A stretch of 64,000 bases of DNA. It comes from Penicillus capitatus. Its lineage: Eukaryota > Plantae > Chlorophyta. The notes below the pieces were generated by a model. It saw only the letters and a program-made list of their open reading frames with translations, made no database searches and was not told the origin of the DNA. Both the position numbers and the translations under genes were made by a program. Shown here piece after piece: positions 16,594 to 57,693 of this stretch. Position 1 is the stretch's first letter, and each line of letters starts with the position of its first letter. The DNA lies in contig OZ287706.1 of NCBI GenBank assembly GCA_965649825.1, forward strand, positions 248,001 through 312,000. Reading direction: 5' to 3'.

Positions 16594-16669
16594 TACGACT
16601 GCGCAACAAATGAACGATGTGACGTAGAGATAGACGCCATTTGTTCAAGAGCTCGGCGCCCGTGGTATC

Positions 16670-17738
16670 ATGCAGCTGAGTGTGACGCCCGAAGAAAAAG
16701 TGCAGGATGCATTGAAGCAGCTGCGTGTTGTCGACCGAGCCGACATCGACATCGTCTTCCGGCGCCTCGCCGATGCGCATCTCTACCAAGTAAATACACA
16801 CCGACGCGCCTAAGCCTTTTACGAAGTCTGACAGGACTTGGTTGCTTTTTTGAACAAATGGCAGTCAAAGAGCTTCGAAAAATGCGTCGCCGGAGTGCGA
16901 AACGTGATCGATATGTTGCAAGGGCGTCTCACGCGCGACCACACGTCGGCGGCGACGAAGGACATGCGAGACTTCCTCAAAGTGCGTTTCTGAGCACGCA
17001 TGGCTCTATCTCGATCAGCGGAGGCCTCTTTGCCATAGTCTCTTCAGAATGTGCACTCGGATCAGATGCTCGACGCGATCTTTGACATCCTCTTCTCCTA
17101 TTCCGATGATGTGACGTTTCTGGAGTTTGTGGATCTGAAACGTGTGGATGGATTTCTCAAGGCCAGGTGTCCTTTGCCGATTGGCCGCCTGACGCTGCAG
17201 TCGTCAATGGATGTGCCACCCATGACACCAGAGCACGTCAAAGCGACGATCATCATTGCGAAGCGTTGTCACAGAAATGGCGATCATCTGAAGGCAGGAC
17301 TCCTGTACCTCCAACTGACATGTCGTCGTGCACGAAGTGACGAGAATTTCACATTGGAGCAACGATACGCATTGCTGGACAGCCACGTCCAGACTTTGGT
17401 ACGCGAGACGTGCAGTAGGTGCACTCCTGAGTATGGCGGCGGCCCTTGTAGTTTCTGCATTCTGGCTCTGTATCGGCCCTGAGGCTCCTTGAGCGTTATC
17501 GAAAAGGAATCCTCTTACAGAAGATGCTGCTCTCGGCAATGGGGTCCGTTCGCGATGCAGCGACGAAACAGCTCAAAGGGGAAGTGCTTACGGATCGACA
17601 ACTCTTCACGTTGGTCACGACACATCCCAAACTCAAGGTGTGTCGACCGAGCGAACAGCAGCCGGTTGTTATATTGTCTGTCAGGATGACATTCGGTGGA
17701 GAGAGGAGCTGTTGAATTGGGTGCAGAGTTTTGAGTGA
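16670..17738 (+). CDS. NUP155: Nucleoporin NUP155, C-terminal segment only (~290 aa, multi-exon)
   Basis: Spliced product MQLSVTPEEKVQDALKQLRVVDRADIDIVFRRLADAHLYQ|DLVAFL...FEKCV...|SLQNVHSDQMLDAIFDIL...AKRCHRNGDHLKAGLLYLQL...FTLEQRYALL|...LLERYRKGILLQ...QLKGEVLTDRQLF matches in order the Nup155 helical region as I recall it (e.g. EEKENVAREA..ADLQTVCKRF..FYEAVV; AKYY..H..AAHVFLRLA..TLERR). Confidence 0.8.
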
Positions 17739-17770
17739 ATGCTGGCGGCGGTGATTTTCCGTTTTCAGGT

Positions 17771-19191
17771 TTAGAAATCCGCATCTGTTGAAAAAACGTA
17801 GTGATTGCGTGACTTCAGGGAATCCATAACGCCAGCTGCTTGGTACTCGGCGACTCTTCTCTCGAAGAAATTTGTCTTTCCCTGAAGCGAGATCATCTCC
17901 ATCCAATCGAAAGGATTCGATGCGCCATAGATCTTGGAATACTGCAGCTGAACTAATAACCTACAGCAGAAAACTATATCGGTCCAAGACGTATGTAATA
18001 TGTGCAAAGAGTGACCTATCTGCCACAAACTGAATGTACTGCTGCATGAGCGTGGCGTTGATACCGACCAGTGAGACCGGCAGCGCTTCGCTGCAGAATG
18101 CGTTCTCCAGGTGGACGGCCTCTCGAACGATCCTGCAAGAGAGGTCGGTGGAGAGATAAGAGAGACGCCGTACGTGTGTGCCGTGACTTCTGGCAGTCGG
18201 TGTTTGAGAAGGGCATACAGACAGCATGCAAAATCTGTATGGAGACCCTCGTCACGTGAGATCAGCTCGTTTGAAAAGGTGAGTCCAGGCATCAGCCCTC
18301 GTTTCTTCAGCCAGAAGATGGCACAGAAGCTCCCGGAGAAATGGATGCCTTCGACACAGGCAAAAGCCAAGAGACGTTGGGCAAACGACCCGTCTATCAG
18401 GCTTCTCTCAATAAGAGCGACGACGCATCTTCATACACACCTGACTGAATCCATTTGAGTGCCCATTCCGCTTTCTGGCGGACACATGAGATGGAGTGGA
18501 TGGCATCGAAGAGATGGTGTCGATGGTGGACATCCTTAATGTAGTGCTCCAGCAGTAAACTGTACATCTCACTGTGGACATTCTCAATGGCGATCTGAAA
18601 TCCATAGAACGCACGAACTTCTGGAATCTGCACTTCTGAACCACACAGTACTGTGGTTCATTGCTGCGCCGCCATCGCCACTTGCCTTGAAAGAATCGGA
18701 CGGCTAGGTTTTCGATGACGATGCCATCGGATGCTGCAAAGAACGCCAAGACGGTCGAGATGAAGTGTTTCTCGTCTTTTGTCAGCGTCAGCCAATCTCT
18801 GTTGTCCTGAGAGAGATCGACCTCCTCAACGGTCCAAAAACTGGCAAGGGCTTTTTTGTAGAAAGTCCATAGATCTCGAAAGTGAACAGGGAACATGGAG
18901 AAGCGATCGGGGTTCTCTCGAAGCAATGGCTCCTCTTCGACGACCTCCTCCGGTGCACGACTGCACGAAGGGACATGTGTAAACCCTGATGGCTGGATGG
19001 GCAGCATACCAGTGTTGAGGATGCGAGATGTTCACCATCCTTGGCAGATCGGAGGATCCAGTAGAATCCGTTTTGCTGAGATCTTCGGCAGAGAGGCCGC
19101 CGTTAAGACTCACCTCGGAACTGGTTTGGGGTATTCGAGTGCACGCGAACGGGACCGAGTATTACTTTTGGCTGTGGATCTTGGTCGTCAT
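17771..19191 (-). CDS. RNR2: Ribonucleoside-diphosphate reductase small subunit (class Ia beta)
   Basis: [95 protein letters not shown]. Confidence 0.98.
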
Positions 19192-19599
19192 GAGAAGCGC
19201 TCGTCGCTCGGGAGAAAACGCTCGAAGCAACGCCGCCGCTCTGTTTGGAAACGAGACTTGAAATGTCCCTTCTTACGAGATGGCGACGGAATTGATGCTA
19301 ATAATGGACAGAGGGCTCAAGCATTTGGAGAGTTACCGTGCTTCTATCGCGCGCCATTCTCTGCAAACGCGAGAGTATTTATTAAGTAGATATAAAATCG
19401 TTACTGCAAGTTGTCGCCGCCGCCAAAGTCACATTGCAGAATAGATAGGACCTAAGGTGAGCGGTTTAAAGTGGAGGAGAAAACTCCAGAAGGACGGCTT
19501 AGTTCGATATCTGTTATATATCAGCCGAACGGGACAGTGACGCCGAGACGATGAGGATTCATCTCGGCTGCCTTCACGGATCGTACCCTAAAACGTCTT

Positions 19600-20700
19600 T
19601 CCTGTAAAGTTGACTCTTTTAAGGTAGGGATGTCAATAAATGTGCTGTACACAAGCCACGGCCTCTTTTATTCTTATTAGAAGTGCGTTTTTGATAGATC
19701 GCTATCATTCAGAGTTCAGTAAGTATACGTTTGACGTTAGTATAGTTGAAAATTTGTATGGTTCAGTTTCTTTCCCCGCAATTCGGAGATTGTTTTACAT
19801 ACACACGAACTACACAAAGACTGCATTGAACTTAAAAAGTTGTCGGCATAGAGTTAGGTTACGGCACAGAGTCTTTGTTGAAACTGGTCACCAAAGGCGT
19901 TGTACCTTTGTAGTATATCACTTACAACTGAACGATCTACATACTACGTATGGTGGATACGGCATTCCTCTTGACAACACTGAAGAATCCATCCACTCAG
20001 GCTGTTTTTGCAGTTTATCTTAAAGAAAAAGATCTTGCGCTTCTTGGGCTCACCCTTTAGTTCTTCGACCTTCTTTCGAACCTCTTGTCGCGGAGGCGTT
20101 CGTCATAACGACGAAGGTCAACAAAAACTGTTCTAACAATGCATGTCCGGCATATACGTCGCGAATGTAATAACATGCCGTTCGACCACGCCTTGGTCAT
20201 CTACGCGAAGCTGAGCACGGTGTGACTACGGCACCCATTTACTAGTGTTCTTATGCGAACGTTATCCCGATTCTTCAACATCCGCATTCTTCGTGTCAGA
20301 GCCAACAAGTTCTATGCACAATCTATCATCAAGTCCCGGATTCCTTCAAACGACAAGGTTATCTTTGAGGACATGTTTTCGCGACCCAAAGTGTCCAATG
20401 CCGCCGATATTGTTCTAAGAAGTTCTCTGAATCGTCTCCAACTTAATGTCCATCGCTATTGATTCCAATCTCGTTAACTATTTCCAAAGAATGATCCTTC
20501 TCCGTCTATACTCAACCCATCTCTTCATATGTTCAAGCACGTTTGTTCGGTGTGAACTTTGTAATCGTGTTCACCTCCACGTTGATGATAACTTCTGCGT
20601 GCTTTGTGCAAGGACTGTCCATCGTTTTGATTGGTCATTTAGCCTATAATATGGTTTACTGCTACTACTCTGCTTTATACTGATTCGTTTGCCTGGGTGT
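19600..20700 (+). mobile_element. AT-rich island with a decayed ORF, possibly the 3' end of a non-LTR retrotransposon
   Basis: ~140-codon frame (20140-20560) with scattered stops ending LQLNVHRY*; adjacent frame CELCNRVHLHVDDNFCVLC resembles a C-terminal RT zinc finger. Confidence 0.3.
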
Positions 20701-21156
20701 GTACGTTAACGACAAAGTTGCCAAGTTGCTTTTGTACTCATAATTTGCAAAGTTTTTGACTTGGAAGTTTGAGCTTGGTCCGCGAAGATTCGGTCAAATC
20801 AATCGTGATGTTCGAGCACCATCGTATTCCGCCAACGTTGCAGTGATTACATGAGTTATTCTTTTCTCTTCTTTCCTATCCTATCTTTAATGTCGACTGT
20901 CAGTCCTTCATAATGATGGGACGGCTGTCATTCACAATGACGCTACGCATTGAGTCACAACAAGTTGATCGAGCAAGAACAAATCCTTTAGACAACGTTG
21001 TTTCTTTGAATAACGCCAATGAAGATCTAACGGCACCTTGATCAGCGCTGTCGTGTGTGTTGTGATCTCAAGTGGTGGGTGTTGTTGAGTCATTGCGTGT
21101 GCATGGTTATACGACGCAATCGGCACACAAAGAATCTTCTGAAGTGACGTTATCTG

Positions 21157-22720
21157 ATGAAGAGCAGCGCACTGATCGTATCGCGAAGTCCACTGCCGAC
21201 GCGGGTCTCCTCGCGAACAGTCGCGATCGGAAGACCTTCTGCCCTGAAAGAGGTCTAGCGACACTGCTTTATGGAGTCGTTGACAGGCAAAACCTCTCGT
21301 AGGATGATCGATGGCACGATCCGATACAGCAAGCGGCCTTCGGTTTACTGGGGACCGCGACGCTCAGTCTCACACTCGCCTTCGGACCCGAACAGGTCTG
21401 ATTCACCTGAAGACTCCTTGAAAACACTGTCTTCCTTTTAGATGGCCGTATTCCCAGCCACTGCCAATTTACCAAGTGGGGTGACGGTGACCAGTGCCCG
21501 TGCTCTGTTGAGAAATGCACTGCCAATTAAAAACGCTCCGATTCGGACGATTCAAAGAAATCTGGAAGCGATTGATGAGTTTGTCAGGATTCCGGGAAAT
21601 ACTGGCTTTGGTCAGATCAACAAGGCTGCCAGAAAGAGTCTCAGTGTCGTCGGAAAGGAACAGAATCGAATCCTGTCAGACGTCATTCCATCCAAGAAAG
21701 TGAGCATTTCTCCAGTTTGCCGATACATCAGGTGAGAAACAGGAAGAAGCCGCTCAGAAGCTGGACAAGTTAAAGACGGAACTGCCGGAGTTGATCGAAA
21801 TGATCAGCAACCGCGACAAGAATGAAGTCCTCTTTAAACAGCAAGCCCTCTTGGAATACGTCAACTTTGTGGAAGAGGCAATGGTTCAAGAGTTTCCTTT
21901 CGCTGTTCCACCCGAGTACAAGACGCTTCCTCAACTAAAGGCATCTCACCACCCACCCTCTTGCAACTGAATGGCATTCCAGGGAAGAGCAACGGTGGAG
22001 ATGAAGGTGAACTTCAAGGAGAAGTTCAGGGGAGACAACGCGATATTGAAGATGGTGATCGACGGTTACAATGCACCGGTGACTGCTGGCGATTTCATCG
22101 ACCTCGTCCAGAAGAAATTCTACGATGGCATGGAGATACAGCGAGCTGACGGGTAAGACTTGTTGGCATCACAAGGCGGTCATCTAACGAACAAGGCATG
22201 CACAGATTTGTCGTGCAGACAGGTCGACCGGACAAAGGCGAATTCTACATCGATCCCAAAACAAACCAACCTCGCATGTCTCTTGAGATACGCTCGAGTG
22301 GTTTCGCTCACGTTTGGACTGTAGGATTCCATTAGAAGTGAAGATCGCGACAGATAAGGAGCCAATCTACGAAGAATCGTTTGAAGACGTCGGGCGGTTT
22401 AACGAGCAACCGTCGCTGCCGTTTAATGCATACGGAACCATGGCGATGGCGCGATCTGAATTTGAGAACAATTCAGGATCTTCGCAGTTCTTCTTCCTCC
22501 TCAAAGAATCGGAACTGACGCCTTCCGGATCTAATCTTCTGGATGGACGATACTCTGTCTTTGGCTACGTTATTGACGGACAGGATGCCTTGGGAAATAT
22601 GAAAGTATGGATCGCCGCCAATTAAATGCATCGAAATGTGTTCGCTCGTTGCGTCAGGTCGGTGACGTGATTGAATCTGTCCGTGTCGTGGAAGGAGGAG
22701 AGAATCTGCAAGTGGCTTAA
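21157..22720 (+). CDS. CYP38: Thylakoid lumen cyclophilin CYP38/TLP40
   Basis: Transit-like [21 protein letters not shown]; [13 protein letters not shown]; [31 protein letters not shown]; [51 protein letters not shown]. Confidence 0.97.
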
Positions 22721-23087
22721 CGCCTTGATGGATGCAGAACGTTTTGAGATTGTTACTATTCATTTTTGAACACATTTTGAAGATTCCTTTTGAAATCTCG
22801 TTGTTTGTCATGCCAAACATAACAAGCGATCGCGTTCGTACAGAACTTAACTGCTGCTGTCTTATCTGCGAGGAAACTCTCACTGTGACGCGATGAGTGA
22901 CCGGTCGGCAGTTGAGCATTCTGACAGATCAGCGTCGCGCTTTCGTATCTTTATGTTGGTGGTGACGCACTTCTCCTTCTCGGCGCAATTCCGTCCATCT
23001 TGAGAAATCTTCACCTTCGCGACCATAAACTGTAAAGAGAGAAGAGAAGAAGCTCACACTTGGCTTCCTCTCTTTTGCGAAAGCTGT

Positions 23088-26000
23088 ATGGTCGAGGGGA
23101 CAGAAGACAGGAAACGTTTTTTATCTACCAGTGATGTTTCTTTCGAAATTTGCCCAGAACGGCGATATCCTGACGACCGTGTTCAGCCAGCCGAAAAAGC
23201 TTCTAGGCGGGCAATGCTACACTCCAGGGTGGCTTCGCCAGGAGATCGGACGATTCGTGAAATTCAACGAAACGATGGAGTGTGTCCTTAACATAAAGCC
23301 ACATCGTCGGCGTACTTACCGTTTAATACGATGCGCATGAAACCGACGCGTTGACGTTCAATGGAAGACGAAGACCAGCAAGCCATTGGCCTATTCGCAT
23401 TGGAGAAGTGCGAATCTCCAGTCATCGACGATTCTACATACATTGCCGTCACTCCTACTACTACCTTCGAAAGCAATGATGCCGAGATCATAACTTCCAC
23501 CAGATGTGCAACGACTGAGATACAACGGGACGTCGTCGCAGTCGAGGAAGCATCCGTCGAGCAATCTGAAGACGGTCCGCAATGCGACACGCCACAAGAC
23601 AAGGGCAGAGAACAGATGGAAGAGGGTACCACAGAGATGCATGACAAAGGCAGGCCACTCACCGTCTCCCAAACGGTGCATCTTTGCAATCTATGTGCAG
23701 TGCTCTACCTCGAATACAAGCACGAGGACGATGGAGACGAGATGCGTGTTGCCGCTGAGATAGAACAGGCGGAAACGCAAGGTAGATGTCACCATTTTCT
23801 GACCAACTGAAAAAAGTTGGCGCCAATCGCGTTTAGCTACGACATCCAAAGCACCGAAAAATCGGACATTAGAAAGAGAGGGAGCTTTGAAGAAAAGGCC
23901 TTCGGCGGCGGCGGTCGTTTCTTCGGAAATTTTGATCGATGTGGACGACAACTTCGACGATCAAAGCCGTTCGAGTGAAATCGAAGTCGCGAGAGTGGTG
24001 TCCAGTTTGCAAGTCGACGTTCCTCGACAGAAAGGACCTTTTCTCGTCGACGACGGATCTTCGCGAACAGTTTCTACCGCCAACAGCACACCCGTAGCAA
24101 CAAGTCTCGCTCATCTGTCTGTCTTGTCAGCAAACTTCACAGCCTTGCCAGGAAGAACACAAAATTTGCAGCATGACGAAGAGGACATCGACGACGATGA
24201 CAGTTCTCGGTTTCCTGCGTGGCTGTCACTGCGTGGCAGAGCAACGCGAGACGACGACAGTATAGCGCCATCTACAGTATGCCCATCCGCAACGGGAGAC
24301 GCCCTCTCAAGTGGTCGTCGGCCTTTCTCTAATAGGATGCCACGACATATCGACGTGCTATCGAACGCGTGCGCGTGATTCAGGAAGAAGAAGATCAGCA
24401 GCTCTTCACAAAAAAGAACCTCTACGCAACACTCTTCCTCAAACTCAAGAGATGGAGAAGATCTTTTCAGTTTTCCATATGGTCCACACGCATTCAGGTC
24501 CGTTTTGCGCCGATCTCTCGCTTTCCTTTGTCGAGAGGAGTGCTTTTGAGGCTGTGGAAGGAAAGCACGGGTCTAATGTCGGGCTCACACTGTACTTCCT
24601 GCGCTGGACGGTTCTCCTCAACCTTTTCATTAGCCTTCTCTGGATAGCCTTCACCGTTGTCCCTTTCGTCGTCTATCCACCCGACACCTTTTCGTGGGAT
24701 CTCTTCACCGAGAGCAGCACCGCGGATATCATTAGCGTCTGTCAACGATCTCGTCTTTCCCGTGAGTGCACGTGTTTCTGGATAGGGGAACGTTTTGGGG
24801 TATACATGGTTTCTCTATGGCGGATATCAGTACCCAGTGAATGCCACCTACGGTGGAGTCTACGAGCCTGGCATTGCATTTCCCTTGGCCTCCTGCTTGA
24901 TGCTGTTCGGCAGTTTGATCTCCCTCCTTATGGTGATCGGCAAACGTATTTCTGGAGAAGGCAATTCCAGCGTCATCGAGCAGAATCAAACCTATCCCTT
25001 CTCTTCCGTCGTCTTTGCCAGCTGGGATTTCCACATCAAAGAAGCCGAGGCCGTTCGAAATCTGAAAAACGCACTGCGATCTCAGATACGTGAGATGCTC
25101 CACGATGCCGAATGGAACCAAAAGACGACGACATTCCAAGAGCAGCTATTGACCGGTACGTCGTGTGCACACAGATTCCGATGACCGGCGGCGCGTTTCA
25201 GGAACGACGAAACTCATTGGAACGCTGGTACTGTGGCCACTCATCGTGTGCTTTACTGCTGCTGCAATGTTCTATACCATCGACAAAGGAGATGTGATCA
25301 ACCGTTTCTTCAGCTTCTCTTTTGCCCAGTCGATCACGATCACCTGCGTCTCGCTTGCCGGACAGGTTTCGGTGAGATCGACTGTTAAGTATGAAGGATG
25401 GCATCCTCGTGTGGCACAGCAAGTCGATAGCAACGACGCCACGGCAAAGGTGACAGTGCATTCGATTAGGTCGAAGCGATGAAGCTCTTCTCCGTCAAGT
25501 TGATCAGCTTGGCCGTTATTCTCTACAAGCTCTATGACATCCAAGAGCGGGCGACGGCGGCGACGGAGCGACTGGAGGAAAGTGGGCCCAGTGGAATGAA
25601 CACGTGTGATGGTGACAATGCTGACGCATGCGGAGTCGGCTTACGCTGTTGCGACGACGTCTGTGCCCATCGTCTCAGTGCCTCTTACCTGGTACGACCA
25701 CTACCAAACACCGCTCGCTGCTCAAACCTCCCTTCCCTAAAGGGGCGTTGCGTACCCATATGCGAGGAGAATGAGATGGGGATGATTTTCTACCGACTCG
25801 TTATGACGAACGGTTTTATTCTTCTGATCCAAGAGGTTTTACAGGCACTCGTTGTGAGCAAGTGCTTCGAGAATCCTCCGAGCTTGGATGCTGCAAAGTT
25901 CTTCGTAGACATTATTGACACTCAAGTGTGGCCGCCGCCCTCCGAGCGAAGCGCAATGTGGTGTCCTGTTTTAGGCGCTTGTCTGGCTTGGGAGCATCGT

Positions 26001-26662
26001 TGCTCCTTTGCTACCTCTCTTCGGTATCATCTCGAATATCGCCAACTTCTTTGTGAAGACCTGGTTGGCATTGTACATTTACGATCCTCCTGTCACCACC
26101 TGCAGTGCCGCCCGCAATTCCAACATGCAATACAACCTCATGCTCTGTTAGGCTGACCCACCAGAAATGCTGTCTTATGTTATGTGTGCCTATGTAGTGA
26201 CTTTACTGTTCAGTACGTTGCCGGTGACGTCATTCTTCTACGAAGATCGTGACATGTGTGGGCCGAATGCGGATCAATCGATGGCAGATGCACTTTCCAG
26301 ACGAATGCACCGAGTGCCTTCATTCATCAAGACCTTAATTCGCTGGCTGACGAATCCGCTCATCCTCGGAGGTCTTCTATTCGTGGCCGTCTTCTTTTTT
26401 CTCCTCGAACGTGTGCACAAGCGCAAGTACCGGAGAGAAGCCACTGAAAGCAAGACAGAGTTCGCTCATTACAGGTAGAGACATCCCCCTAGATCAGCCG
26501 GCCTCTGATATGAAATGGAACTACTGTGCCAGACGTGACATGCGACTAAAAATGCAAGAGACGCGCAGCAGAACCGCATCATCACATTGTATGGGGACGT
26601 GGCGGTACGCTGACTCGCAAACAGTACTCGAGAACGAGAACTCGTTATCAGAATCGGTATAA
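23088..26662 (+). CDS. TMC: Transmembrane channel-like (TMC) protein with a long acidic N-terminus (ends approximate)
   Basis: AFEAVEGKHGSNVGLTLYFLRWTVLLNLF, FSSVVFASWDFHI, CEENEMGMIFYRLVMT, multiple TM segments across many short exons. Confidence 0.85.
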
Positions 26663-26885
26663 ACTGCTTAACATATCAAGTCTCGAGTCTCGAGGCTTCC
26701 ATGTACAAGTTTGCCGAAAAAGGCAAATGAGAATAGAGAGAAAGCAAGGTTCAAATGAAATAGAGCTCGTTGCCAGACCATCGTTAGCGACAGTCATCAA
26801 AACTGAGACACATGTAGTTGCCTAGCTTTAAGAATCGCAGAACGGCGACTGTCTTGCTGGTTCGAGTTCCGCAAAAAGGTTGCAT

Positions 26886-27307: not shown

Positions 27308-27445
27308 TCTTTCTTCTGGAATCAATTGCGGCGAAAAACAAACACGGAGAACTGCCAGCGGAATAAAAATTAAACCAGGAAGCTAGCCAACACAGCGTCT
27401 CTCTAGCGTCATGCTGATGATAAGACACGTCGTCTCACGGTCACG

Positions 27446-29220: not shown

Positions 29221-30949
29221 CGTGTCGTGAACGCAATAACGGGACGCGCACCGTTTAATCTGCCTTACGAAGGTCGCCCACTGCGGCGCTCGGCTCCCGT
29301 TGCCAAAGACGTGTAGCGAAGGAAAAGGCAAAGGCTAGTCGAATTTGGCCGATCGGTTTCCTGAAATGGTACTCTGCAAAAATAAGCGCTTTTGTCGTGT
29401 CGATTTCATCTCTAAGGCCACTTTGCGATATACGAATCTTTAAACCTGATTGCCTTCGTTCTTGATCCTATATATATTGGCATGTGCACGTTTCGCTGCA
29501 AGATATATCTCTTTGTGCGAACCTTCTACTTCGAGCAGTGGACCGCTTTTGTCAAAGGCATTTATTTATGAGCACTGTCATGGCTAATGCCCGTAGCATC
29601 GGTACATGGAAAGTATAGGCTAAGAGATATTTCACGATGGACCTGCACGCAGATTTTAACATTTCCCAGAAATCTTGTGCAGTGAATTAAGCCGATCGGC
29701 CAGTTTTAATGTATGTACTTCGTCGTTTATCTTGTTCGGATCTTCATCTAAACGGTAGAAAGACAGAGCTCCATTTGGATTGCGTTCTTAGAGTTACACA
29801 TCTGAGGAAACTGATTTGGTATGCATCGTAAAGCTAGCTTTTCAAGGGAGAATGCTTCGCAAAGCTTTTCAAAGAAAAGAAAGATTGGGTGATGTGGCGT
29901 GCTCGCCGGATCTACTATGGCGAAACTTAATGCTATACCGAGGTCTGGTGTCGTATGCTAGGTGATCTCTCCTCAGTATTGGTACTAGTATTCCCAAAAT
30001 TCACTACGACGATAGTCAAAACATCGTGAGTATGTGGATGGAGCCGTCTCACTTAATTTTTTTGTTCTGATGGTATTTCGAATGCGATAGACACCCTAGC
30101 AAACTTAAGAACATCAAGCTGCAAACCATGTTACAATACTTGCGAGTGAACAGACAGTTCGCTGCCGATTAGGATAAAAGAACTATGAGCGATCTGTGCT
30201 TCAATACATTTTTGCGAACTTTAAAACAATAAGTACTTTGAGTTACATGACTATTGTCTCAACGAGTCGTTCGTAAGAATTGATGGGAAGTGCCTTTTTA
30301 AGTTCGTTCAGTTTCGATTTGCAACTTCAGTTAAAGTTGGCAACGCGCATCTTGTTCTACGGACGTGGTACCCATACTGCCACTTCGACTCCGATTCTAA
30401 GTTCGCCTCAAGGGTGGAAACTTCGAATCAAAAATCCCGAATATCGACTTTGAGCTCTCCCTTCAATTCTTTTATCTATCGTCAAATCGTAGTAATCAAT
30501 CACTGCACCCGTTACTTATACGGTTCCTTTCTATATTATTATTTCTTAATACATCTTCCCTGAAAAGGCTCACCTTTCCACCGATAATGACGTCTACTCT
30601 TGTCAATAATATATGTTATCTCTATACTTCTGAACCAATGCTCATTCTGCAGCTTCGGCACTGTTAGACGAGTCCTATAATACTCCTGATTAATGTCTTT
30701 TCCTTAGTAGGGTTGTTTCCGTGCACAATTGACATGCACATTTATCAAAACTTCAAGAAACAGTCGAATAATTGATTGTAGAAGGCTATCAGTTTCTTCG
30801 ATGGAGAATATTAAGTTGGAGCAAGTTGCGAGAATGTTATCATGCCCAACGGATGTTTTTTCACCCTTACTCTGTATTCTGCGTCGGCATCGAATGTCGT
30901 CACTGGCTTCAAAACGAAACAACACGTCGATTCGTCTCCTATAACGTCC

Positions 30950-32400
30950 CGCACCATTTACCGAACTTCAAGATCTTTGTAGTGTATAAGTTGTCACTTA
31001 GTGCATGTAATTGCGATGATGCATAGATATCTTGTCATGCTCAACATTAACTAACTGTAGGCCGTTGTTCTCATGGGCATATTCACAATTGATCTGAGCT
31101 GAGAAAGACTATCGTGATTGTGTCAAATAATAACTAGATCCACTTCAATCATAGCTGTCAATAATTCAGGAGATCCGGAGACAACTCACGAGCATAAGCG
31201 TTCAAGTCATCGTAACTTTGATTGGATCAGGCACACTTGGATTTGCCAGTTGCAGCGCTCTTCGGGCGAAGCCTCGAAGGGTGACTGCATCTGATCTGCA
31301 AAGCGGGATCTGCTAAAGATTATGATGTGACAAACGTCTTGTCAGTTGATACTAGGATGTGACGTTACAACATGACAGTCGTTCCTAATGTGTGCGATTT
31401 GCCAAAACGACTCTTCTCCCTAACACAAAACTCTCTGAAATTGACGTTTGGCTTGACACCGAGCAACCGGATATTCTACTTGTTTCTGACCCTCCCTGGT
31501 TCCTTCGTAAAAACGGTTACTGTAGTGGATCTTTCTCCTGGATCAAAGCCATTTGCAATGATAAAGATTCGCTTTGTGGTATGTTTGTGAACCGTAACCT
31601 GCCTTTTCATCAAATTTCACTGTGTCATTCTAACAGAGTTTGTGCAATTGAACTTCTCGCTCCATGTGGTTCTATTATTATCATTTCGTTTTACCTCCAA
31701 CCAGGCTCTCTTGAAGGGCTTGCCCCCTGAAGGAAGCGGTTAACGAAGCTAAGACTAGGTGTCACAGAGTTTTCATAAGAGGCGATGGAAATGGTCACAC
31801 CCCTCTGTGGGGTCGCAAAGAAACAAATTCTGCCGGTATTGCTCTTGAAGATTTCATTATTTTCAATGACCTGAATACAATAAATAATCCTGCTGACTCT
31901 CATTCTTTTCGAGACAATAATGACAACGTGCATTGGATGGATCTCTCTCTTTGTTCTAGTGGCCTTGCTAACTATATCATGTCGTGGAACATTCTTAGTG
32001 ATCGCTATCCATGTAGTGATCATGAAATAATCAGAACCACTCTGCAGTTTGATTGTCCCGATCCTGAAATTAGGTTGTCGATTAATTGGAATCGTGTCAA
32101 CTGGCCTGCATTCAATGATTTGCTTTTTCCTCACCTGACTCACGGTGATTTTCCGGCGGAGAACACTACAATTTGTTTAGTTGATCAGGCCCCGAAACGA
32201 TTGTATTATGCGATTAACAATACAATGTCCTCTCTTGCCCTGCTCTATCTGCGGAAATTCAATTCTTGATCGGGAAGCCTCTCTTTCGTTGGAATCACAT
32301 TGAATGGTCCAGTGATATGGTCTTGGCCATGTCAGACTTCGCATCCTCGTTTGCGAATGGTTTGCTATCAATCCCGCCTTAACTCGGCTGAACGACTATT
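30950..32400 (+). mobile_element. Decayed non-LTR retrotransposon: APE endonuclease plus linker, possible gag zinc-knuckle remnant, no RT
   Basis: EQPDILLVSDPPW, CAIELL..IIIISFYLQP, FIRGDGNGHTPLWG..TNSAG..LEDFI, WMDLSL, SDHEII (AP-endonuclease motifs) with stops and frameshifts; embedded in an AT-rich tract at ~29350-32850. Confidence 0.85.
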
Positions 32401-34365: not shown

Positions 34366-34399
34366 TTCAGCGTCACTACAACAGCGTCAGATGTCCATA

Positions 34400-39844: not shown

Positions 39845-39850
39845 GATCGT

Positions 39851-48128: not shown

Positions 48129-49979
48129 GGTCGTTTGCTTCTTTACAAAAGTGACCGTGTTGAGAACGATGCAAGACGAAGAAGAAGGCACCGAGAGTTT
48201 CGGAAACGCCGTCGATTATTCACCGATTGCTAACTTTTGGCGAACGGCAAAAGGGCAATGTGCGTTTTTATAGGTGCCGGCGAACCGCGTGACGTGGACA
48301 TTGGATCTGCCACGAAGAACGACTGTAGTCAGCTGTCTAGAAACTGCTACAGCTGGCACGGGCACCCTTCCGACTAGATTCCGTCTCAAAAAAACTTCGC
48401 CAGCTGTTGTGAATCTACCCTCGTTGCCTGCATGAATGGCATGTGCTCAAAGAACGAAGGCAAAACACGCTGTTGACGAATACCCCGAAGAAGATTTCTC
48501 GTCAGATGGTGGCAAGGGGTGGATGTCAGGTAACGTATTTGGTGAGAACTAACAAAAAATGGGTCTTTACACAGAAACCGTCATAATAAACTATGTATGC
48601 TGAAAGATGGTGCTATACTGTCCAAATGCTTTTTGAAGTCAACGTGGAAGGCGAACACTTAATATTACGCCAGCGGTGCGAGAGTATTGTGGGCACGCGC
48701 TCTGATCGACAATTGCCGCTCCCCTCATGCTGTCTTCGTGCTCACATGTTCGTTGGCATAGATGTTTGCGCCATTCGAACAAAGCTAATCGATGAACGGC
48801 TCCGAATGCGTGATTTTCCATCGGGAGCTGTCACCTGTCGTGAAGAGAGTTTAGATACTAGTCCTGCAGATGGATCTTATCTTGAGAGATCGCGCTACAG
48901 CGCAGCCTTCGTAAGCTTAAAACGTCTCGATCATCGAACGCCCTCGCAGAGAATGGACGGCTCAGTTGAATCCATTGGGCAACTCCCACTCAAATCTCGA
49001 TGACGGCACAGGACTGCCGTCTCTGCAGAGATACATTGATAGAAATGTAAGGTGACATCCAAACAGGAGGTATGCCATTGATGATCTATCCATCTCTTCG
49101 TCGATGGCTTCTTCAGACCACCAAAGTGCTTTTTCTTATGAGAATCGCTAGACGTCACATCCGTTTGTAGCTAAATCCGTACGGCAGGCAATTTGGTGCT
49201 GCTAACCTTCTGCTTTGGAGGATTCAACAAAGTGCACTGCCCGTCGAGAATCTTCGCGACACGGCGATTCCTGACGGCGATTATATTAACGGGCATTCCT
49301 TTGATGCTTAATGGACTGCCGAAGACCGAAACCCAGAGGAGCGGAGACTTGAGCACATGGAACGTCGGTTCCGTAAGAGGAGCTGCAGCGTGACTTTTCT
49401 ACCTTGAAGCGTTCCGCCCAAGCATGATCTCCTAGTCCTTATCGCAAAGACAAACGCACGCGTCTCGTGCTGCAACAACGTGACGTCGCCGTCGGAGTTT
49501 GCTAAGAGAATGAAAAACCGTCTGATGTTATAGACCGCCGGCAGGTACCACTGCCTCTGAAAAGAACGCCCCAGTCCAATTGCTTCGTCGAGATGGCTGC
49601 CCATTCTCTATCACCACAAAGAGATTTCAGGAGCACTAAAAGTTGAAGGCTGTATGAGGTGCGACATGATCGCTGATCTCGTCGATTCCATTTTCCGTTC
49701 TGTGCCATAACTCGATAAACAAATCATCCAAGATTACTCTTTGTAGGTGGCATGGGACGGAGAAGCTATGACGAACGCTCGATAGCGAGAGACAGGGCAT
49801 GGCAGTACGTCGACGGATGCACAGAGACGCAGACGCGTTTTGGCAGATAGTTACTAATATTTGTTCGGTTTTTGCGCCCTTGTGGCGAATGATCGAAACA
49901 AGGACATTGGGTTTCCTAGATGCAAATCTCTGTTCTGAGTAAAAAAGATGAGGGTGCGGTTGATTGTCTGATCTCTTCC

Positions 49980-50940
49980 TCAGCCATCAAAGAAAGCAAT
50001 CGCCGCAACTTGGCCACCTTTCATGGCGTTCGAATGATCATCCCTGCGAAGCTTCAGGAGTACTCTCACCTGGAGGGGTGGGAGTATTCCCACCGCCCAA
50101 GACTGCTTGCACGTCCCGTCCGTCGGCGGTCAATACAACGAGGACGCCATCGACGACGGACACATTGATTTGGTCCACGACCACTCCCGGGGTGACAAGA
50201 GCCAAGGCCATGGAGATGACTTGTTCATAAGGAGGCGCAAGAGATGCAGCCAGCTCGGTTGAGGAAGAACTTTCTTGACCCGCTCCGCTCAGGCACAATG
50301 CATTCTGTGCCGATTCGAAGAAGGCAACAGTCACTGTCGCAATCGCATCGATCGCGGCAGTGGGGTTGACAAATGCGATAAGGTCGGAGGCCGCAGAGAG
50401 AACCTAATCAGCACATCGATGCATCCGACCGTCAGCGGCCAAAGGAGAGGGCGCACTTCGACGAGGTCTCTAGCAACGGTGCTGGCTGCATTGTCGGAAG
50501 GGATGGTTGCCTGACCGCACGCATCGCCACCTCCTCCCGTCGAAGAGAGCTCAACGGAAACTGCTTGAATGAAGGCATCGGCGACGGCCATTGCGTAGCT
50601 TTGTGCAACGGATTCTGCGAGAGAAATGGCGGCGCCGCCCGATTCGATCTCCGCAACAGCATTCGCGACAGCAGATTCCAACAGGTTGCGCGCTTCCGCC
50701 GCGGAGAACTCTCTCGCGACGCTGCTCGCGGCGACGCTAACAGTGCCCGGTTCGTCCACTGTAAGGCTTCCACTCACCGTGGCGACGGCCTGCAGCAGCG
50801 ACTTTCCTGCAGAGCCCGACATCTCACGGACCTGCACACTGCCTTTACAACAGACAGTTGTTACGCCTTTTCGCCGTTACTGCAAAGACGTGCTGAGCGC
50901 AAAGCACGAGAGAGAGGAGAAGGATCGATCCTCGATGCAT
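49980..50940 (-). CDS. Secreted Ala/Ser-rich protein, paralog C
   Basis: MHRGSILLLSLVLCAQHVFA|VREMSGSAGKSLLQ...DACGQA...DLVE|VLSAASDLIAFV..NALC...|GQVAAIAFFDG*. Confidence 0.85.
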
Positions 50941-51811
50941 CTTTGCTTTATCTCGGTACGGAATGATTGTTCCGACGCGATACAAGCTCGTCGAAATCTG
51001 AAGAAGACAAACTTGATACTTTCTTCGATACGAGTGAATTGGTGATTGGGTCTCCGACTCGGATGCCTTTTATCCTGTCAATCCTGCCGCGGCCTTGGGA
51101 ACCTGCCACGAATACTAGCAGCTGTCCAGCGTCTGACATCCGCGGTGGTCATCACGTGGAATGTTCCCGTCAGTTCATTTTCGCTACCCGACGCGCTTTT
51201 CGCGCGATTTGATTGGAGCGGGTGCTGACGTCGACAGCGAAGCTGCCGGCGAAGTCAATCGTCAGACTCCGGGCAATACGCGCAAACTGTACATCTGAGA
51301 AGCTCCTCCATCCCAGACTTGGGTAAGAAACTGTACGAGCCATAATTGTTCGTTTACCGATGTAAGCGAACAAACTTCAGACTGACATCCACCTTCCATG
51401 TCATCTACAGAACGGGAGGTCAAAAGCATGGCGTGCTCAAATCTGTTGTTCCGTGGCGGCTTCAGGTAAGTTTCCTCTAAGAGATGGTGGGTCTCCTCTG
51501 CCACACGCCTTTCTGTACAATTCGCTGCGCGTGCGGAGAAGAGAAACCAGCAGCGAGGCATTCGGCTCGAACCACGACCGTCTAAAGGCGCGTTGCTTTA
51601 TCGACGGTTGAATTTATTTGGAGGCGGTGTTTTGTCAGAATCTCTCGACAGAGAGAGAGAGTAGATCGTGGGTTGATTGCTTTCTTATATACAAGGTCGG
51701 TGTTGGTAAGCGGACAGTGACTGGACTTTGCTTTCGTCAGGTCTTATCGCCGTTCCTCAGCGCGATTGGCGCGTTCGTGATACGTGACAAGACAGTTGAA
51801 GGCGGGTTTCG

Positions 51812-52295
51812 ATGATCGTTCGCTGTCTCCAAGCTCACCGTCTACTCCATCCTCCGCGTCAAACCTCTCTCCTCCCGCGGTGTCATCCCCGTCGACGAAA
51901 AAGCGCAGATAGCTACACTGCCCAACATCGCACTCGTCAAACCGTCCCTCCCCTTTTCCGACTCCCGGCCTCCGACGCGTCAGAAATTGGCCAAATGAGT
52001 GGCGCCATTATCGACTCCATGAAAACAAAGATCCAAGAAGCTTTAAACGCAGAGAAGGTCGAGATCGTCGACGTCGAGGGCGATGCACGTCATGTGACCA
52101 TCAATGTCGTCGCCTCTGCCTTTGAAGGTAAGCAGACACCACAGCACCCCTCCATTTCTCACTCTCTTATGATCAGGCAAATCGAGCGTCGATCGTCAGC
52201 GAATGGTCTACAAAGCGATCTGGCTGGAACTGCAGGATGCCGTCCATGCCGTCGATACGATGACAACATCGACACCCAACGAAGCAACGACTTAG
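51812..52295 (+). CDS. BOLA4: BolA-family protein with organellar transit peptide (BolA4-like)
   Basis: [37 protein letters not shown]|[26 protein letters not shown]; GTAAGC...CAG intron. Confidence 0.92.
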
Positions 52296-52355
52296 AAAGA
52301 CGTATCCAACCAACTGTTATCAATGTCCCATTCCCTGAGTTCCCTACTCGTGCAC

Positions 52356-53455
52356 TCAATGGCAGTTAAGAACGAGCCACTGAACGGCGGCTTCGATCTG
52401 GTTGTTATTCTCTAGTAGGGCGTCGACGGCATGTCGGCGCGTGTATCCCAATTCCATAATCTTCTCAATGGCTCCCGGATCTGCCTCGACCTCTTCATCC
52501 TCTTCCTCTTCGATCTTTTTGCGAGTTCCTTTTCGTGGCCTCTTGCAGAAAGGCTCCTCACATACGATAGCGATTTCGCGTTTCTTGCAGGGCAGATGTT
52601 GTCGCATGCCCACATGTGGCTGACAGAGACGATACAACCGCACTGCTTCTTCTCTCAGTTCTCTCAGCGCCCGAATCTTCTCCGTGCGCTTCATCAACGT
52701 CACATCTCGATCTAACGTCACATCATCTCACTCAAATGAACGATGTACTTCGAAGCATCTACGCAGTGATGTGACAGGCTTTCGATGACGGGATGCACAA
52801 GTCACGCTTTCTTCTTGCGATCGCAAAACTGTTCTTCGAATCTTTTCCAATTCTTCATCCACTGCAGCCTCCTGTGCTTCTGTCAGGCCATACTGCGCGA
52901 TAACATCTGTTCTTCTCCTTTCCCTATCCTCTGGCAAAATTGTCCCTGATGTTCGTCATCACACGTCACATCGCATGGATGTTGCACAGAGAATGCCTGC
53001 GGTGTTGATAATGACCCCTCCCTTTCGAGTCACATCTCTTCGTGCTGCATTATCTCGACGGACCCTCTCCACATCCACACACAATCCCGAAAACACTGCC
53101 TGGATTTCGAGACACTTCACAGAACTGTCTTTTCAGACCTGATAGCGATTGCTGCCCCAGGAGGCGCTGTGTCTGATTGTACAATTGACCCGTGAGTTTT
53201 CCCGGCAGCAATCCCGTATTCAACACCGCTGTCCATTGGCCGCTGCCATACTTCATGAGACAAAGCTCAAGGATTCGCGTTTCTTCGGCTGTCCATCCAG
53301 GGGCGCTCGTAAAATTCCACCTGACGTCATGACACGTCGTTCAATAACGTGCCGTCCGAAAACGGGCGTCATGTGCGTCCCGGTCGCAGCGACGTCGCGC
53401 CTCACAGTGATTTTGCGTCGCCAGTAGAAGGACCACGTTTCTTGTCCGTAGCCAT
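52356..53455 (-). CDS. AMTP1: Homolog of p1/AMTP1 (HTH subunit of the MTA1/AMT1 DNA N6-adenine methyltransferase complex) with C-terminal UBA domain
   Basis: Spliced MATDKKRGPSTGDAKSL|WNFTSAPGWTAEETRILELCLMKYGSGQWTAVLNTGLLPGKLTGQLYNQTQRLLGQQSLS|VFSGLCVDVERVRRDN..RKGGVIINT matches the recalled ciliate p1 signature KSLWNYTLSPGW..QTQRLLGQQSL..RKN..IINTG. C-terminus PGAIEKIMELGYTRRHAVDALLENNNQIEAAVQWL is UBA-like. Confidence 0.85.
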
Positions 53456-53752
53456 GATGATCTCATGCAACTCGTCAAGCACAGCGCAAAAATGGAAGCA
53501 GAATTGCAAAAATGGTCAACACGTGCCGACGGCATGCACGACGCAGGCTCTGGCGCATTGCGCGAACGGCCTTCTGTGTCCGCCGACCCTCGCAGCAATG
53601 CGTTCTCCTTCATGACGCCCGTTGTCACTGCGTGTTCATTCGAATCGTACACGCCAAAGTGGCGCTTTTATCGAAAGGGATGTCCTGGACAGGTGACTTG
53701 GCTGAAGAAAGGACCTCAGCACCCACCCCGTCGTACATGTCGTACATGAGCC

Positions 53753-54526
53753 ATGGCGGAAACGCAGACCGACCTCAAACGCAAAGCGGCGGAAAGACGC
53801 CAACGGATCTTGAACAACGCAGCGACGCGCATGAGCCGCATTCATGGTCGTCCTGTCGAAGAGACGACGCTGCTGGAAGACGCTGTCGTCCATGAGCCTT
53901 CTGTGGAGACACCTCCTCGCACCGAACGCCCCATGAGCACCACGGATGTCGCCGCGCGGTGCGAAGTGGCGCCAAAGGTGAAGGAGAGAGAAAAGACATC
54001 GCCGTCCACTGGGTCTCCCTTCGAAATGGCAGCAGTTGTCATGCACGTCACACATCGTCTGCAAATTGTGGTCGCTTCGATACTGGCTGTTTGGTATGCC
54101 TTCTTCGGATGGGTATCATCCTCACCACTCGGTCTCCTCTTCGTCAGCGAAGTCCTTCCTCGATGTCGCCGCCACGATTTGACAGCTCTGCCATAGGTCA
54201 CCCTCATCTCTGGGTCGTGGATGTATCTCTCTCTTGTGCCACGCCTCAAAACGCGACAAGTATGCGTCCCATGTGATGGACAGGGGAGATGTCGGGCGGG
54301 TCTGTTGCAGATTGAGCAGCTGCGTCAGGAGAGGCGATTGCTGCGCAGTCTTGGAGGGAGTTGGATTCCGAATGTCCTTTATCGCGTCCATACCGTCGCC
54401 GCTTTGCTTGGCATCGTCAATGACGTGCATCTCTGTTTTCGAATCGTCTACGCCGACGTCGCCGTTTTTGTCGTCTTGTGCATCGCCCTGCGTCGAATGG
54501 AGGATCTGTCAGCGGAAGAGTTATGA
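53753..54526 (+). CDS. GET2: GET2/CAML-like ER tail-anchored protein insertase subunit
   Basis: N-terminal basic helix KRKAAERRQRILNNAATRMSRIHG, disordered linker, C-terminal TM segments. Confidence 0.6.
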
Positions 54527-54575
54527 GGCTGCAGTTAAAAGGGAAGGCGATAGGGCATGGACAATGCGGAAATGT

Positions 54576-54935
54576 TCATTCTTGTGTGCTTCTGTGTGTG
54601 ACGTGCGTTTTCTGAGCGACATTCCAGAAATACCAACGGCGAAGCTGATTGAGTTGCGCCATCTCATTGCAGATGTGACATGCCAAGAGGAGATAGTTAC
54701 GTGGCTGCACTCTCCAGGCGAAGCGCATGAAGAGAAGGGAATAGACGCAGAGGACGCCAGTCATCTTGGGCGAAATGATCTCGGGAGACTTGCGTGCATC
54801 TGAAAGACCCGCCAGGACGAAACCCCAATTGGCAGCAGGACCCCAGAAGTGTGTTGTAAAGATGCCTTCGTTTGAATACGCCCAAGTGCGAAAACGCGAT
54901 AGCAGACCGACGGCGCTCTTCCCATTCGCAGCCAT
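54576..54935 (-). CDS. MPC1: Mitochondrial pyruvate carrier (MPC1-like), intronless
   Basis: [56 protein letters not shown]; an in-frame upstream ATG lies at 54995. Confidence 0.97.
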
Positions 54936-54984
54936 GGAGACGAAGGCGACAAAACGGTGCGCGTACCGGTTCGTTTTTCCGTTG

Positions 54985-54989
54985 TTACA
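54985..54989 (-). terminator. TGTAA poly(A) signal downstream of the NUP155 N-half stop
   Basis: Minus strand reads TGA ttcgaacgcatgcca TGTAA, 15 nt after the stop at 55005-55007. Confidence 0.45.
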
Positions 54990-55004
54990 TGGCATGCGTT
55001 CGAA

Positions 55005-57693
55005 TCAGAGATAAGTATTCTTGAGCGGTCCATTCAAAATCTCCAGTCGTGATTGGAGAACGCTTGACGTTGTCGCCTCGGCAGCTTCTTTCAATCTCCG
55101 CAGCCCCTGAACGCCCGTTTTCAGATCAGCACTTAAGGTGGATCAATGTGATCAACGTGATCAACATACTTCATAGCCATTGATATCTTTCTCGCTCCAG
55201 TAAGTCGAGGCATGGTGCTTGAAGAAATCCATGGACTGGTTATATTCACTGGTGTCCATTTTCAAGTGATCCATAAAGGATCTGATGAATGGTGTGATCG
55301 GCGACTCCAGTTTTCCGGCAAAGAGCAAACGACTGAAGATCTGCAGACACAGAGCCATCCTCACCAATCCGATGGAGTGGATGTTCAGGACCATGTCATT
55401 CAATGCTTGTCTTTCTTCTTCGCTCATGAGCTGAACGATGGAGTGGATCTCTCTCTTTCGAAAAGTGCCGACCAAGATGACTCCCTCACGGCATCTCTGC
55501 ATAAACAGCCTAAAGACAAGAAAACGGATGCTGTCGATAGGGCGGAGATCGATAGAGACGGCTGCTGTACAGAAGCGACATCATTTCGTGGATTTCGATC
55601 TGATCCACTTCGGTCGGGAAAATGAACTGCTCTGAGAGACGAGGATCAAACGGTTTGACATATTCCCCCACGACGTGACGTACGTCATCCAACGCCTGAA
55701 CGGTCCAGAACAGTGCTTGATGTGACAGTTCCTTTTCGGCTTTGAGCTGCCCGGTCGATGGATCTTGAGCAATAGTAAAGAGCTTCTTCCACCAGAACGG
55801 CTTCACGATCTGGCGCAAGATGAGAAGCACGCCCTTGAATGTATCTGAAAATTCGATGTCGTCTTCCGTCTCCGGTCTCTGATTTTCGACGAATGGCTGC
55901 CGTTCCGTAGCATTCTGTTGAGGAGGGGGTATCGTAGGGGGCATGAGTCTGGTCCTTTTCACTTTCTTTGCCTTTTCAAAAAGATCCTGCCGTCCAAAGA
56001 CGCTCTTGATCTGGACAGGATGGTACCGCCCGATCAGACAGAGCATCGCAGCGGTTTCCACTTTTCCATAGAGACGACAGAACTGTTCGACGCATCTGGA
56101 CAGCTGCTGAGGAAACTGAATCTTGAGAATCTCGTGGAGTTGCTCGATCGGAGGACGCACACGGAGAATCGATACGCTCTGTGTGTCCAGCACGATGTGT
56201 CGCGTCAGTGCCGGATTGCATTGCTGCGAGATGAAATCTGTCTCCCGTTCGAAGCCTTCAAAATTGACGCTCTGTTTTGCTTCATGGGTTGCTACGCTCA
56301 AAAAGCCATGGGGCAATTCATACTGTCTTCTCAAGAAAACCGCTCCGTTTTCGATGCGCTTTGTCGGTTCCGCTGCCAAGTACTGCATGACAGAGAAAGA
56401 TTGCACACGATCGAGCTCTTCACACACAAGCCAGGACGTCCCATCAGAGGAAGGCCGGATGGCTGTAACCGTGGCATTTCTGTTAAGGCGTTCGTCGAGA
56501 ACGGGTATCGGTCTGTCGTCATTGATCATCTCGCACTGATTGTAGAACCATCCATCGGATGCCCAATTGGCCGTATTCCAATAGAAACCCTCGAGGTATG
56601 TCACGGTAAACCGCAACCGACGTCCATCGCTGTAGATGCACATTCCACGAAACATGCATTCCTGGCTCTCGATCGGAACGACGTCGATCAGAGTCGACTG
56701 ACCAAAATGACCAGCGTTCGGAAACTCAGTAGCCACGCGACGAATGGGACTGGTCGGGTTATCTCCGCCGAGTGTAAACAGGGCCATTGTATTCGCAGCT
56801 CCGACCACGATCAGAATCTTGCTGTTCTCGTGGACCGTTAGCTTGACGACAGCTCTATTTTGAATAGGACTGGCCCATCCAAGTCCGTTCAACTTGCACT
56901 TTCTCCATCCCAGCGAGATTCCTGAAAGATGCCGTCGTGACGAATGCGAAGAGAATGGCATATGGAGGAGATAACCGTGGTACTGCAGTTCGTAGATGTG
57001 CCCCGAGGAGGTGCCCACAAAGATGCGACCCTGACAGCCGCCACAGACCACTGTCGGTCTCGAAGCAATGTCCGTTGAGATATCGGGACTCTTGAGATGC
57101 AACACATCATCCTTGTACGTCGCCACGAACAAATGAATCTGCACAAACGCATCCTCCGTTCATCATCTGCGACGTTTTTTTATCGACTTGTCACACTTCA
57201 CGCATGTACGCGAGGACGATGATTTTCTGATCGCGCTCGGCAAAGGTCTTTTCAACTGGCGTGACGCAACACATGGTTTGGATGTCGGCATCGACGGGCT
57301 TGTATCTGCGGCAGTTGGACTGGGCGTGATCGTGTCCAATGGACCAGCAAAACAGCTCCTTTCCCGCACTTACCAACACGACCCCATGCGGCCCCAATTC
57401 GGGGATCAATGCTGTAGACTTCACTGCTGCATCTCTGTATGCAGTTGTCGCCTCTGGAGGCCAACTCTGGCGCATCTCTTGGCACAAAACGCTGGGTAGC
57501 TGCACAAACAAACACATATGCATATATATGGTATCGAACGTCGGACGTCAGGAGAAGCCGTCTCGATCGTCGTTCGACGATGTGGTCCTTCGCTTGCCGT
57601 GACGGTCTCGAGCGATGGCGTATCCAAGTATCCAGCGATGATCGGGATGTGGGGCCCATTCTCACGATTCTTACGAAAACGAAAGACGTTCAT
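55005..57693 (-). CDS. NUP155: Nucleoporin NUP155, N-terminal ~780 aa only (beta-propeller plus first helical part)
   Basis: GRIFVGTSSGHIYELQY, QQC..LTRHIVL....LRVRPPIEQLHEIL, EQFCRLYGKVETAAM, FSDTFKGVLLILRQIVKPFW, FFKHHASTYWSEKDINGYE|GLRRLKEAAE. The last exon (from 55106) closes at TGA 55005-55007. Confidence 0.85.

Follow-up and report, generated by a model that had tools for sequence, protein, structure and literature searches.

A 64,000-nucleotide stretch of DNA from the green alga Penicillus capitatus (GenBank assembly GCA_965649825.1, contig OZ287706.1, positions 248,001 to 312,000 of the forward strand; hereafter the window, in whose numbering positions are given) carries the nucleoporin gene NUP155 in two parts. 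NUP155/Nup170 is a keystone of the nuclear pore inner ring. In the window, the N-terminal and C-terminal parts (N-part and C-part) are separate genes on opposite strands. The split is conserved in two lineages, both parts are under selection, and the seam between them is continuous with canonical NUP155. The sequences indicate that the split is real, fixed and old, and that it has been kept by selection in both lineages. The explanation that we favor, and consider modestly probable, is a stable two-gene NUP155 that originated by inversion and whose parts are expressed as two separate proteins. The two genes are as follows.

55170..57693, minus strand: NUP155 N-part gene, 751 aa, beta-propeller and first part of the alpha-solenoid
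57693-57547, 57499-57197, 57138-56976, 56921-55571, 55509-55392 and 55340-55170, minus strand: the six exons of the N-part, with introns of 47, 58, 54, 61 and 51 nt whose splice sites are kept in the sister lineage
16670..17738, plus strand: NUP155 C-part gene, putative continuation of the alpha-solenoid, 285 aa from the conserved ATG at 16670 (297 aa from 16634)
(16634/16670)-16789, 16835-16981, 17048-17398, 17452-17637 and 17685-17738, plus strand: the five exons of the C-part

The N-part carries the N-terminal seven-bladed beta-propeller of the family, as it matched Pfam Nucleoporin_N at 33.3 bits, above the cut-off of 23.7. Positions 1-145 of Nucleoporin_C were also matched in this part, at 15.9 bits, which is below the cut-off. 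Its match in the PDB was Dictyostelium Nup155 (9hcj, E 1.2e-6). A reference profile was made from seven full-length NUP155 proteins recovered by an exhaustive protein search, and hhalign placed residues 53-721 of the N-part on columns 68-766 of this profile (probability 99.75%, E 2e-27). The N-part and C-part taken as a pair are nevertheless very divergent proteins, with 16-18% identity to fungal NUP155. Two introns of the N-part (56975-56922, 54 nt, and 55391-55341, 51 nt) have lengths divisible by three and lack stops, and a bacterial-style open reading frame (ORF) call runs through both. The sister lineage exposes them as introns: the first is 47 nt there, with its donor shifted (GTATGC, against GTTATC in the window), and the second is 55 nt with an in-frame TGA.

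The C-part alone gave no match in Pfam, PDB sequence or PDB profile searches. When it was compared with the NUP155 profile by hhalign, its residues 20-214 aligned with columns 810-1020, directly past the end of the N-part, with a score of 28.4. None of 200 column shuffles reached this score (mean 16.9, maximum 26.4), and the reversed control scored 11.6. These comparisons lend moderate, not strong, support to homology between the C-part and the NUP155 region that follows the end of the N-part. In a MAFFT alignment with full-length NUP155/Nup170, the conceptual join of N-part and C-part was colinear, free of gaps at the seam and reproduced several family motifs; it spans the equivalent of approximately residues 76-1140 of the 1315-aa chytrid NUP155. 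The AlphaFold model of the join was of low confidence (predicted local distance difference test, pLDDT, 56), and its top 26 Foldseek matches were all Nup170/Nup157/Nup155 chains, with E values down to 4e-22. This result is not independent, since homologues were present in the AlphaFold input alignment, and it was counted as support only. Prediction of the C-part without an alignment gave a pLDDT of 50, and a Foldseek search with that model yielded no significant match.

At the seam, an exon end faces an exon start. The last exon of the N-part terminates at GAA/GTATGT (55170/55169) in phase 0, and the C-part begins in phase 0. Flipping the segment from ~16.6 to ~55.1 kb would therefore restore one reading frame. 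A first-pass annotation of the same DNA had proposed that the two halves lie on opposite strands and that one flip restores a contiguous gene, and the phase-0 seam and the colinear, gap-free alignment bear this out. The Nucleoporin_C solenoid is present, but it is divided between two opposite-strand genes and not contained in a single polypeptide. Both the alignment and the model place the seam within a helix of the canonical proteins, so two separate chains would need another way to stay together. A third piece encoding the missing C-terminal tail was not found anywhere in the window.

Other contigs with the locus were located through marker ORFs of each part in the ENA assemblies ERZ25074695 and ERZ26696514. 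In the same species, the 954-kb contig ctg340479 of ERZ25074695 is 99.5% identical to the window and has both junctions; the C-part maps to its plus strand at 281.5 kb and the N-part, ~40 kb away, to its minus strand at 320-321.6 kb. Given that the window differs from this contig by 0.45%, it is another haplotype or individual. Four contigs of a sister lineage (ERZ26696514) carry the same junctions. On one of 914 kb, a distance of 51.6 kb separates the C-part (250.5 kb, plus) from the N-part (302-303.5 kb, minus), and two further contigs, probably of the other haplotype, each span one junction. Nucleotide identity between this lineage and the window is ~82-87%, with a synonymous divergence (dS) of ~0.4. 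The neighbors are identical everywhere: ferroportin, GDPD, the F-box-like gene, the C-part and RNR2 on the left, and the N-part, the mitochondrial pyruvate carrier (MPC) gene and UBA on the right. The synteny check that had been suggested in a sister species thus returned the same split between the same neighbors. No alternative orientation was seen among the contigs bearing exact marker ORFs of either part. An assembly error, which had been named as the finding that would overturn the proposal, is contradicted by the recurrence of both junctions in independent contigs of two lineages. The arrangement had been described as possibly fixed, polymorphic or switchable; the presence of both junctions in the same-species contig and in the sister lineage speaks for the first, and the other two found no support.

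Both parts are constrained. Between the window and the sister lineage, the ratio of nonsynonymous to synonymous divergence (dN/dS, omega; Nei-Gojobori) came to 0.17 in both parts, with a dS of 0.46 over 756 codons in the N-part and of 0.37 over 297 codons in the C-part. When the exon models were projected on the relative, the frames were open, every GT..AG was retained in both parts, and no in-frame stop was present in any of the conserved exons modelled. Purifying selection together with intact frames and splice sites indicates that neither part is a pseudogene and that the split predates substantial divergence. A second intact NUP155 was not found in N-part searches of 5.8 and 1.84 billion proteins, which returned only fragments from this locus itself, the sister lineage and a distant alga, plus far-off fungal NUP155. 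Exon 1 of the N-part (57693-57547), whose peptide has 54% identity to its counterpart in a distant alga (P0035/L008), shows an unusually low synonymous divergence (dS 0.18, against ~0.46 for the whole gene); the 5' end of the message may be under extra constraint.

Since the reading direction is leftward from 57.7 kb for the N-part and rightward from 16.6 kb for the C-part, a single inversion would restore the gene. To our knowledge, NUP155/Nup170 is a single chain in every characterized eukaryote. Because this holds for all of them, including the full-length proteins compared here, NUP155 is taken to have been ancestrally one gene. One inversion that broke NUP155 within an intron, as the first-pass annotation had proposed, would be the simplest origin; the geometry agrees with it. 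The breakpoints that had been given, 16630 and 55076, hold only approximately. They would imply an intron of 97 nt, whereas the introns of this gene are 44-66 nt, and the sequence brackets the breakpoints only to 16594-16633 and ~54996-55169. As had been noted, no long repeats occur at the breakpoints, and no inverted repeat flanks the two sites. The ACGACTG 7-mer shared by the breakpoints is at chance level and is not conserved in the relative, and the 9-bp complementarity TTATCTCTG/TAGAGATAG is likewise at chance level. After the flip, the F-box-like gene would stand head-to-head with MPC, and the argument that this is a divergent-promoter layout is plausible. The MPC label in that argument is solid (Pfam MPC, E 1.7e-29), but the F-box label is weak (Pfam F-box-like, E 0.09).

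Loci of outgroups were sought in two scans of JGI metagenome contigs, with the C-part and N-part alignments, and these returned nothing. A distant relative (L007, a 2.6-kb Logan contig from ERR4592244; G+C content 0.39; 26% identity) has an exon end at the homologous position. When the C-part was sought downstream on the same strand of this contig by tblastn, a NUP155 hidden Markov model and spliced protein-to-DNA alignment, the latter with the window protein and four canonical proteins as queries, the results were at noise level and mutually inconsistent. A by-eye match in L007 of K/ALHGFEQAMVS to K/ATEHLRQSKSS after a 52-nt GT..AG intron was suggestive and was not counted.

The two junctions contain the following features.

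15682..16593, minus strand: F-box-like ORF, 303 aa, ATG at 16593, head-to-head with the C-part and conserved in the relative
16594..16633: spacer of 40 nt between the ATG of the F-box-like ORF and the old exon start of the C-part
16634..16669, plus strand: 12 former codons that separate the old acceptor (..atAG, 16632-33) from the conserved ATG (16670)
54576..54935, minus strand: MPC gene, ATG at 54935
54936..55108, minus strand: conserved non-coding block upstream of MPC, 86-87% identity to the relative
55109..55160, minus strand: post-stop segment of 52 nt, 49% identity to the relative
55161..55169, minus strand: GTATGTTGA, former 5' splice site of the broken intron, conserved in all four homologous contigs

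At the left junction, the breakpoint lies within 16594-16633, because the spacer is bounded by the ATG of the F-box-like ORF and the exon start of the C-part. In the relative, atGG stands in place of atAG at 16632-33, the acceptor in register with the ancestral exon start. Against the relative, five nonsynonymous changes and one synonymous change have accumulated in the 12 codons that precede the ATG at 16670, whereas omega is 0.15 from this ATG onward. The ATG and the A at its -3 position are conserved. In-frame TAG triplets of the window at 16625-27 and 16631-33 are TGG in the relative. In that lineage an ORF starts at an upstream ATG (equivalent to 16610 in the window), 17 nt from the ATG of the F-box-like ORF. 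A variant genetic code was considered for the TAG/TGG pair, but none of the modelled conserved exons contains an in-frame stop.

At the right junction, the last exon of the N-part would, if left unspliced, run on through GTA TGT TGA, which adds Val-Cys and a stop (..YEVC; TGA at 55163-55161). This stop is kept in every contig. The segment that follows it (55109..55160) is probably what is left of the broken intron's 5' half, 3' untranslated region (UTR), or both. A 9-nt tandem duplication (GTTGATCAC twice, 55143-55160) is private to the window and is absent from the 99.5% identical same-species sequence (L003) and from the relative. Of the conserved block further on, the portion from ~55063 to 54936 is duplicated along with MPC in the relative, and for this reason it is probably the promoter and 5' UTR of MPC. 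The duplication is a ~620-bp tandem one (L001 ~11860-12590; window ~55063-54576), which takes in the block upstream of MPC together with the 5' portion of the gene. The copy adjoining the N-part has ACG in place of ATG as well as internal deletions and is probably a pseudogene; the second copy is an intact MPC. Taken together, the junctions look like a former intron whose halves have escaped splicing constraint, with a new stop for the N-part and a new start for the C-part.

From these observations we infer that the split arose by inversion and that the two parts are translated separately and reassemble non-covalently. One inversion of ~38 kb (~52 kb in the sister lineage) would have cut NUP155 into two genes, its breaks falling in a phase-0 NUP155 intron and in the spacer that separated the F-box-like gene from MPC. 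Translation of the N-part would run three codons into the former intron (..YE-VC-stop). The C-part, now lying against the 5' end of the F-box-like gene, would be transcribed from there, and its translation would start at the internal ATG at 16670. By landing on half of a bidirectional promoter region, the C-part may have been transcribed immediately, which would have made the event tolerable. Both polypeptides would then assemble non-covalently in the inner ring of the nuclear pore and do the job of the single NUP155. It is most likely from the sequence that the two parts are expressed separately and not joined, because the stop and the ATG at 16670 are conserved, the acceptor at 16633 has disappeared in the relative, the codons ahead of the ATG are free to vary, and the half-introns have no complementarity of the Giardia kind.

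Several points weigh against this explanation. The C-part is weakly homologous when taken alone, with an hhalign probability of 3% (E 0.014) besides the absence of a Pfam or PDB match, and it stops ~170-200 residues short of the fungal NUP155 C-terminus. The single-inversion origin of the split is an argument from parsimony. The divergent ATGs at 16593 and 16670 are only 76 nt apart, which is unusual even for this compact genome, so the promoter or transcription unit of the C-part must overlap the F-box-like gene. The remaining points would fit trans-splicing, in which the genomic split is the same but the spliceosome joins two pre-mRNAs into a full-length NUP155 mRNA. We regard this as unlikely, although not negligible. 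The donor would be GTATGT at 55169 and the acceptor an AG, either at 16633 (in the window) or at 16651 (in both lineages), and the junction would read AATGGCTATGAA joined to ACGCCATTTG (16634) or CTCGGCGCC (16652). The donor-like GTATGT stands exactly at the end of homology, is conserved and is consensus-like, but it also encodes the N-part stop, and both this stop and the C-part ATG are conserved. On the other side of the seam, the phase is likewise 0, and the alternative AG at 16650-51 is phase 0 and conserved, with a conserved pyrimidine-rich CCATTTGTTC before it; the acceptor that fits the ancestral exon start, however, has been lost in the relative. A seam inside a helix would also favor a covalent join. 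As to pairing of the half-introns, there is a 10-nt Watson-Crick match between CACGACTGGA (55051-55042) and TCCAGTCGTG (16484-16493) with p ~0.02, and in the relative seven of its ten base pairs persist, with one double change from G:C to C:G, which is a thin hint. These 10 nt are the longest Watson-Crick run, short of the extended complementarity of ~20 nt or more that marks the Giardia type. Of random genomic pairs, 14% reach the duplex energy found between the half-introns (-93 kcal/mol), and once G:U pairs are allowed the longest run is unremarkable (37% of nulls). Complementarity of the half-introns is therefore no greater than expected by chance. Downstream of the donor, 52 nt are unconserved (49% identity), and the conserved block further downstream moves with the MPC duplication in the relative and is probably MPC's. 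Trans-splicing of Giardia Hsp90, by comparison, relies on 26-nt pairing of the half-introns (PMC8494341). That nuclear spliceosomal trans-splicing of a gene operates in this green alga, and has been kept over a dS of ~0.4 without long guide complementarity, seems to us a shade less credible again. We know of no genic trans-splicing of nuclear mRNAs in green algae.

The weak similarity of the C-part raises the alternative that it is an unrelated gene for a small helical-repeat protein, coincidental in position and orientation, and that NUP155 is merely truncated at its C-terminus. This is improbable. The low-confidence single-sequence model and its lack of a significant Foldseek match agree with it, as do the absence of profile matches and the low hhalign probability. 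The hhalign score, however, exceeds all 200 column shuffles and the reversed control; the alignment begins within ~10 columns of the end of the N-part and is colinear through several family motifs; and the meeting of two phase-0 exon boundaries, an end and a start, counts against a coincidental placement. Arabidopsis NUP155 and the Nup170 C-terminal domain rank first by TM-score and probability among the non-significant Foldseek hits of the C-part. It is also conceivable, but very improbable, that the inversion broke one NUP155 copy, of which both parts are decaying remains, while an intact paralogue elsewhere supplies the function. NUP155 is normally essential, and a breaking inversion would be easiest to fix given a second copy; Bryopsidales reportedly show signs of genome duplication (10.64898/2025.12.12.693860). 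Against decay stand the omega of 0.17 in both parts over a dS of ~0.4, the undisrupted frames and ten introns whose splice sites are kept in both lineages, and neither protein search returned a paralogue although both assemblies are in the database. Least credible of all is that the assembly is at fault, or that haplotypes or nuclei differ in the inversion, either as a polymorphism or through switching. The neat geometry and the multinucleate state of the Bryopsidales are all that suggested it, and no positive support was found. Both junctions recur in three independent sequences of one species and in two contig sets from a second lineage, and a single orientation occurs in all contigs. No inverted repeats flank the two sites, and no recombinase domain appeared in Pfam scans that took in part of the ORFs of the segment. 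The junctions have also accumulated changes of their own, namely the AG loss, the TAG/TGG differences and the MPC duplication.

The window is compact, with a G+C content of ~0.50 and introns of 44-66 nt. This G+C content is near the published 52.4% of Ostreobium, against 40.4% in Caulerpa (10.1101/2020.07.21.211367). The other genes of the window encode ferroportin, GDPD, RNR2, a CYP38-like thylakoid-lumen cyclophilin (~21-23 kb), SRP68, a leucine-rich-repeat protein and a UBA protein. The closest named relative of the ferroportin (7527-9176) is that of Caulerpa lentillifera, with 57% identity, followed by trebouxiophytes with less than 40%. This relationship and the CYP38-like cyclophilin suggest a bryopsidalean green alga, perhaps one resembling Ostreobium in view of the G+C content. 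The interval between the NUP155 parts is ~13 kb longer in the relative. Within the window, 19726-20876 fails to align with the relative and 30001-32000 is a low-GC patch (0.41); these may be insertions. The relative has a reverse-transcriptase ORF (RVT_1) upstream of its N-part (L001 3143-4255; L002 1201-2232), in a stretch that does not align to the window (~61.1-62.9 kb).

If the two parts are translated separately, the solenoid of NUP155 works when cut at about residue 840 (chytrid numbering), and the locus is a natural split-protein experiment for pore assembly. If they are joined at the RNA level and this proves true, it would be the first genic trans-splicing in a green alga. When one end of an inversion falls in a promoter spacer, an orphaned 3' gene half could gain transcription immediately. 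Bryopsidales are multinucleate, and in such a cell other nuclei may shelter the nucleus with the broken gene, so that fixation is perhaps easier. Gene predictors will label a locus of this kind as a truncated NUP155 plus an orphan helical protein.

The arrangement is most likely a new instance of gene fission, in a gene without a reported one, as a literature search found no report of NUP155 fission. With NUP155/Nup170/Nup157 it shares the same domains in the same order, propeller (Nucleoporin_N, PF08801) then solenoid (Nucleoporin_C, PF03177). It differs from canonical NUP155 in consisting of two opposite-strand genes, in its low identity to the fungal proteins and in lacking the last 170-200 residues. 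The split genes for Hsp90 and dynein heavy chain in Giardia are likewise two distant pieces divided at an intron with a donor-like GT and an AG. The half-introns there share 26 nt of complementarity (PMC8494341), whereas here the best match is 10 nt and at chance level, the acceptor is unconserved, and a conserved stop and start frame the pieces. The latter features are those of gene fission by rearrangement, in which both parts also persist under selection with stop and start codons of their own: the N-part has a conserved stop, the C-part a conserved start, and purifying selection acts on both. Unlike the usual fission, the break lies at an intron, the parts are on opposite strands ~40-50 kb apart, and the gene encodes an essential single-copy scaffold of the pore. 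Nup145/Nup98-96 provides a precedent for a nucleoporin that works as two polypeptides derived from one ancestral frame. That split is autoproteolytic and post-translational, while the split of NUP155 described here is genomic.

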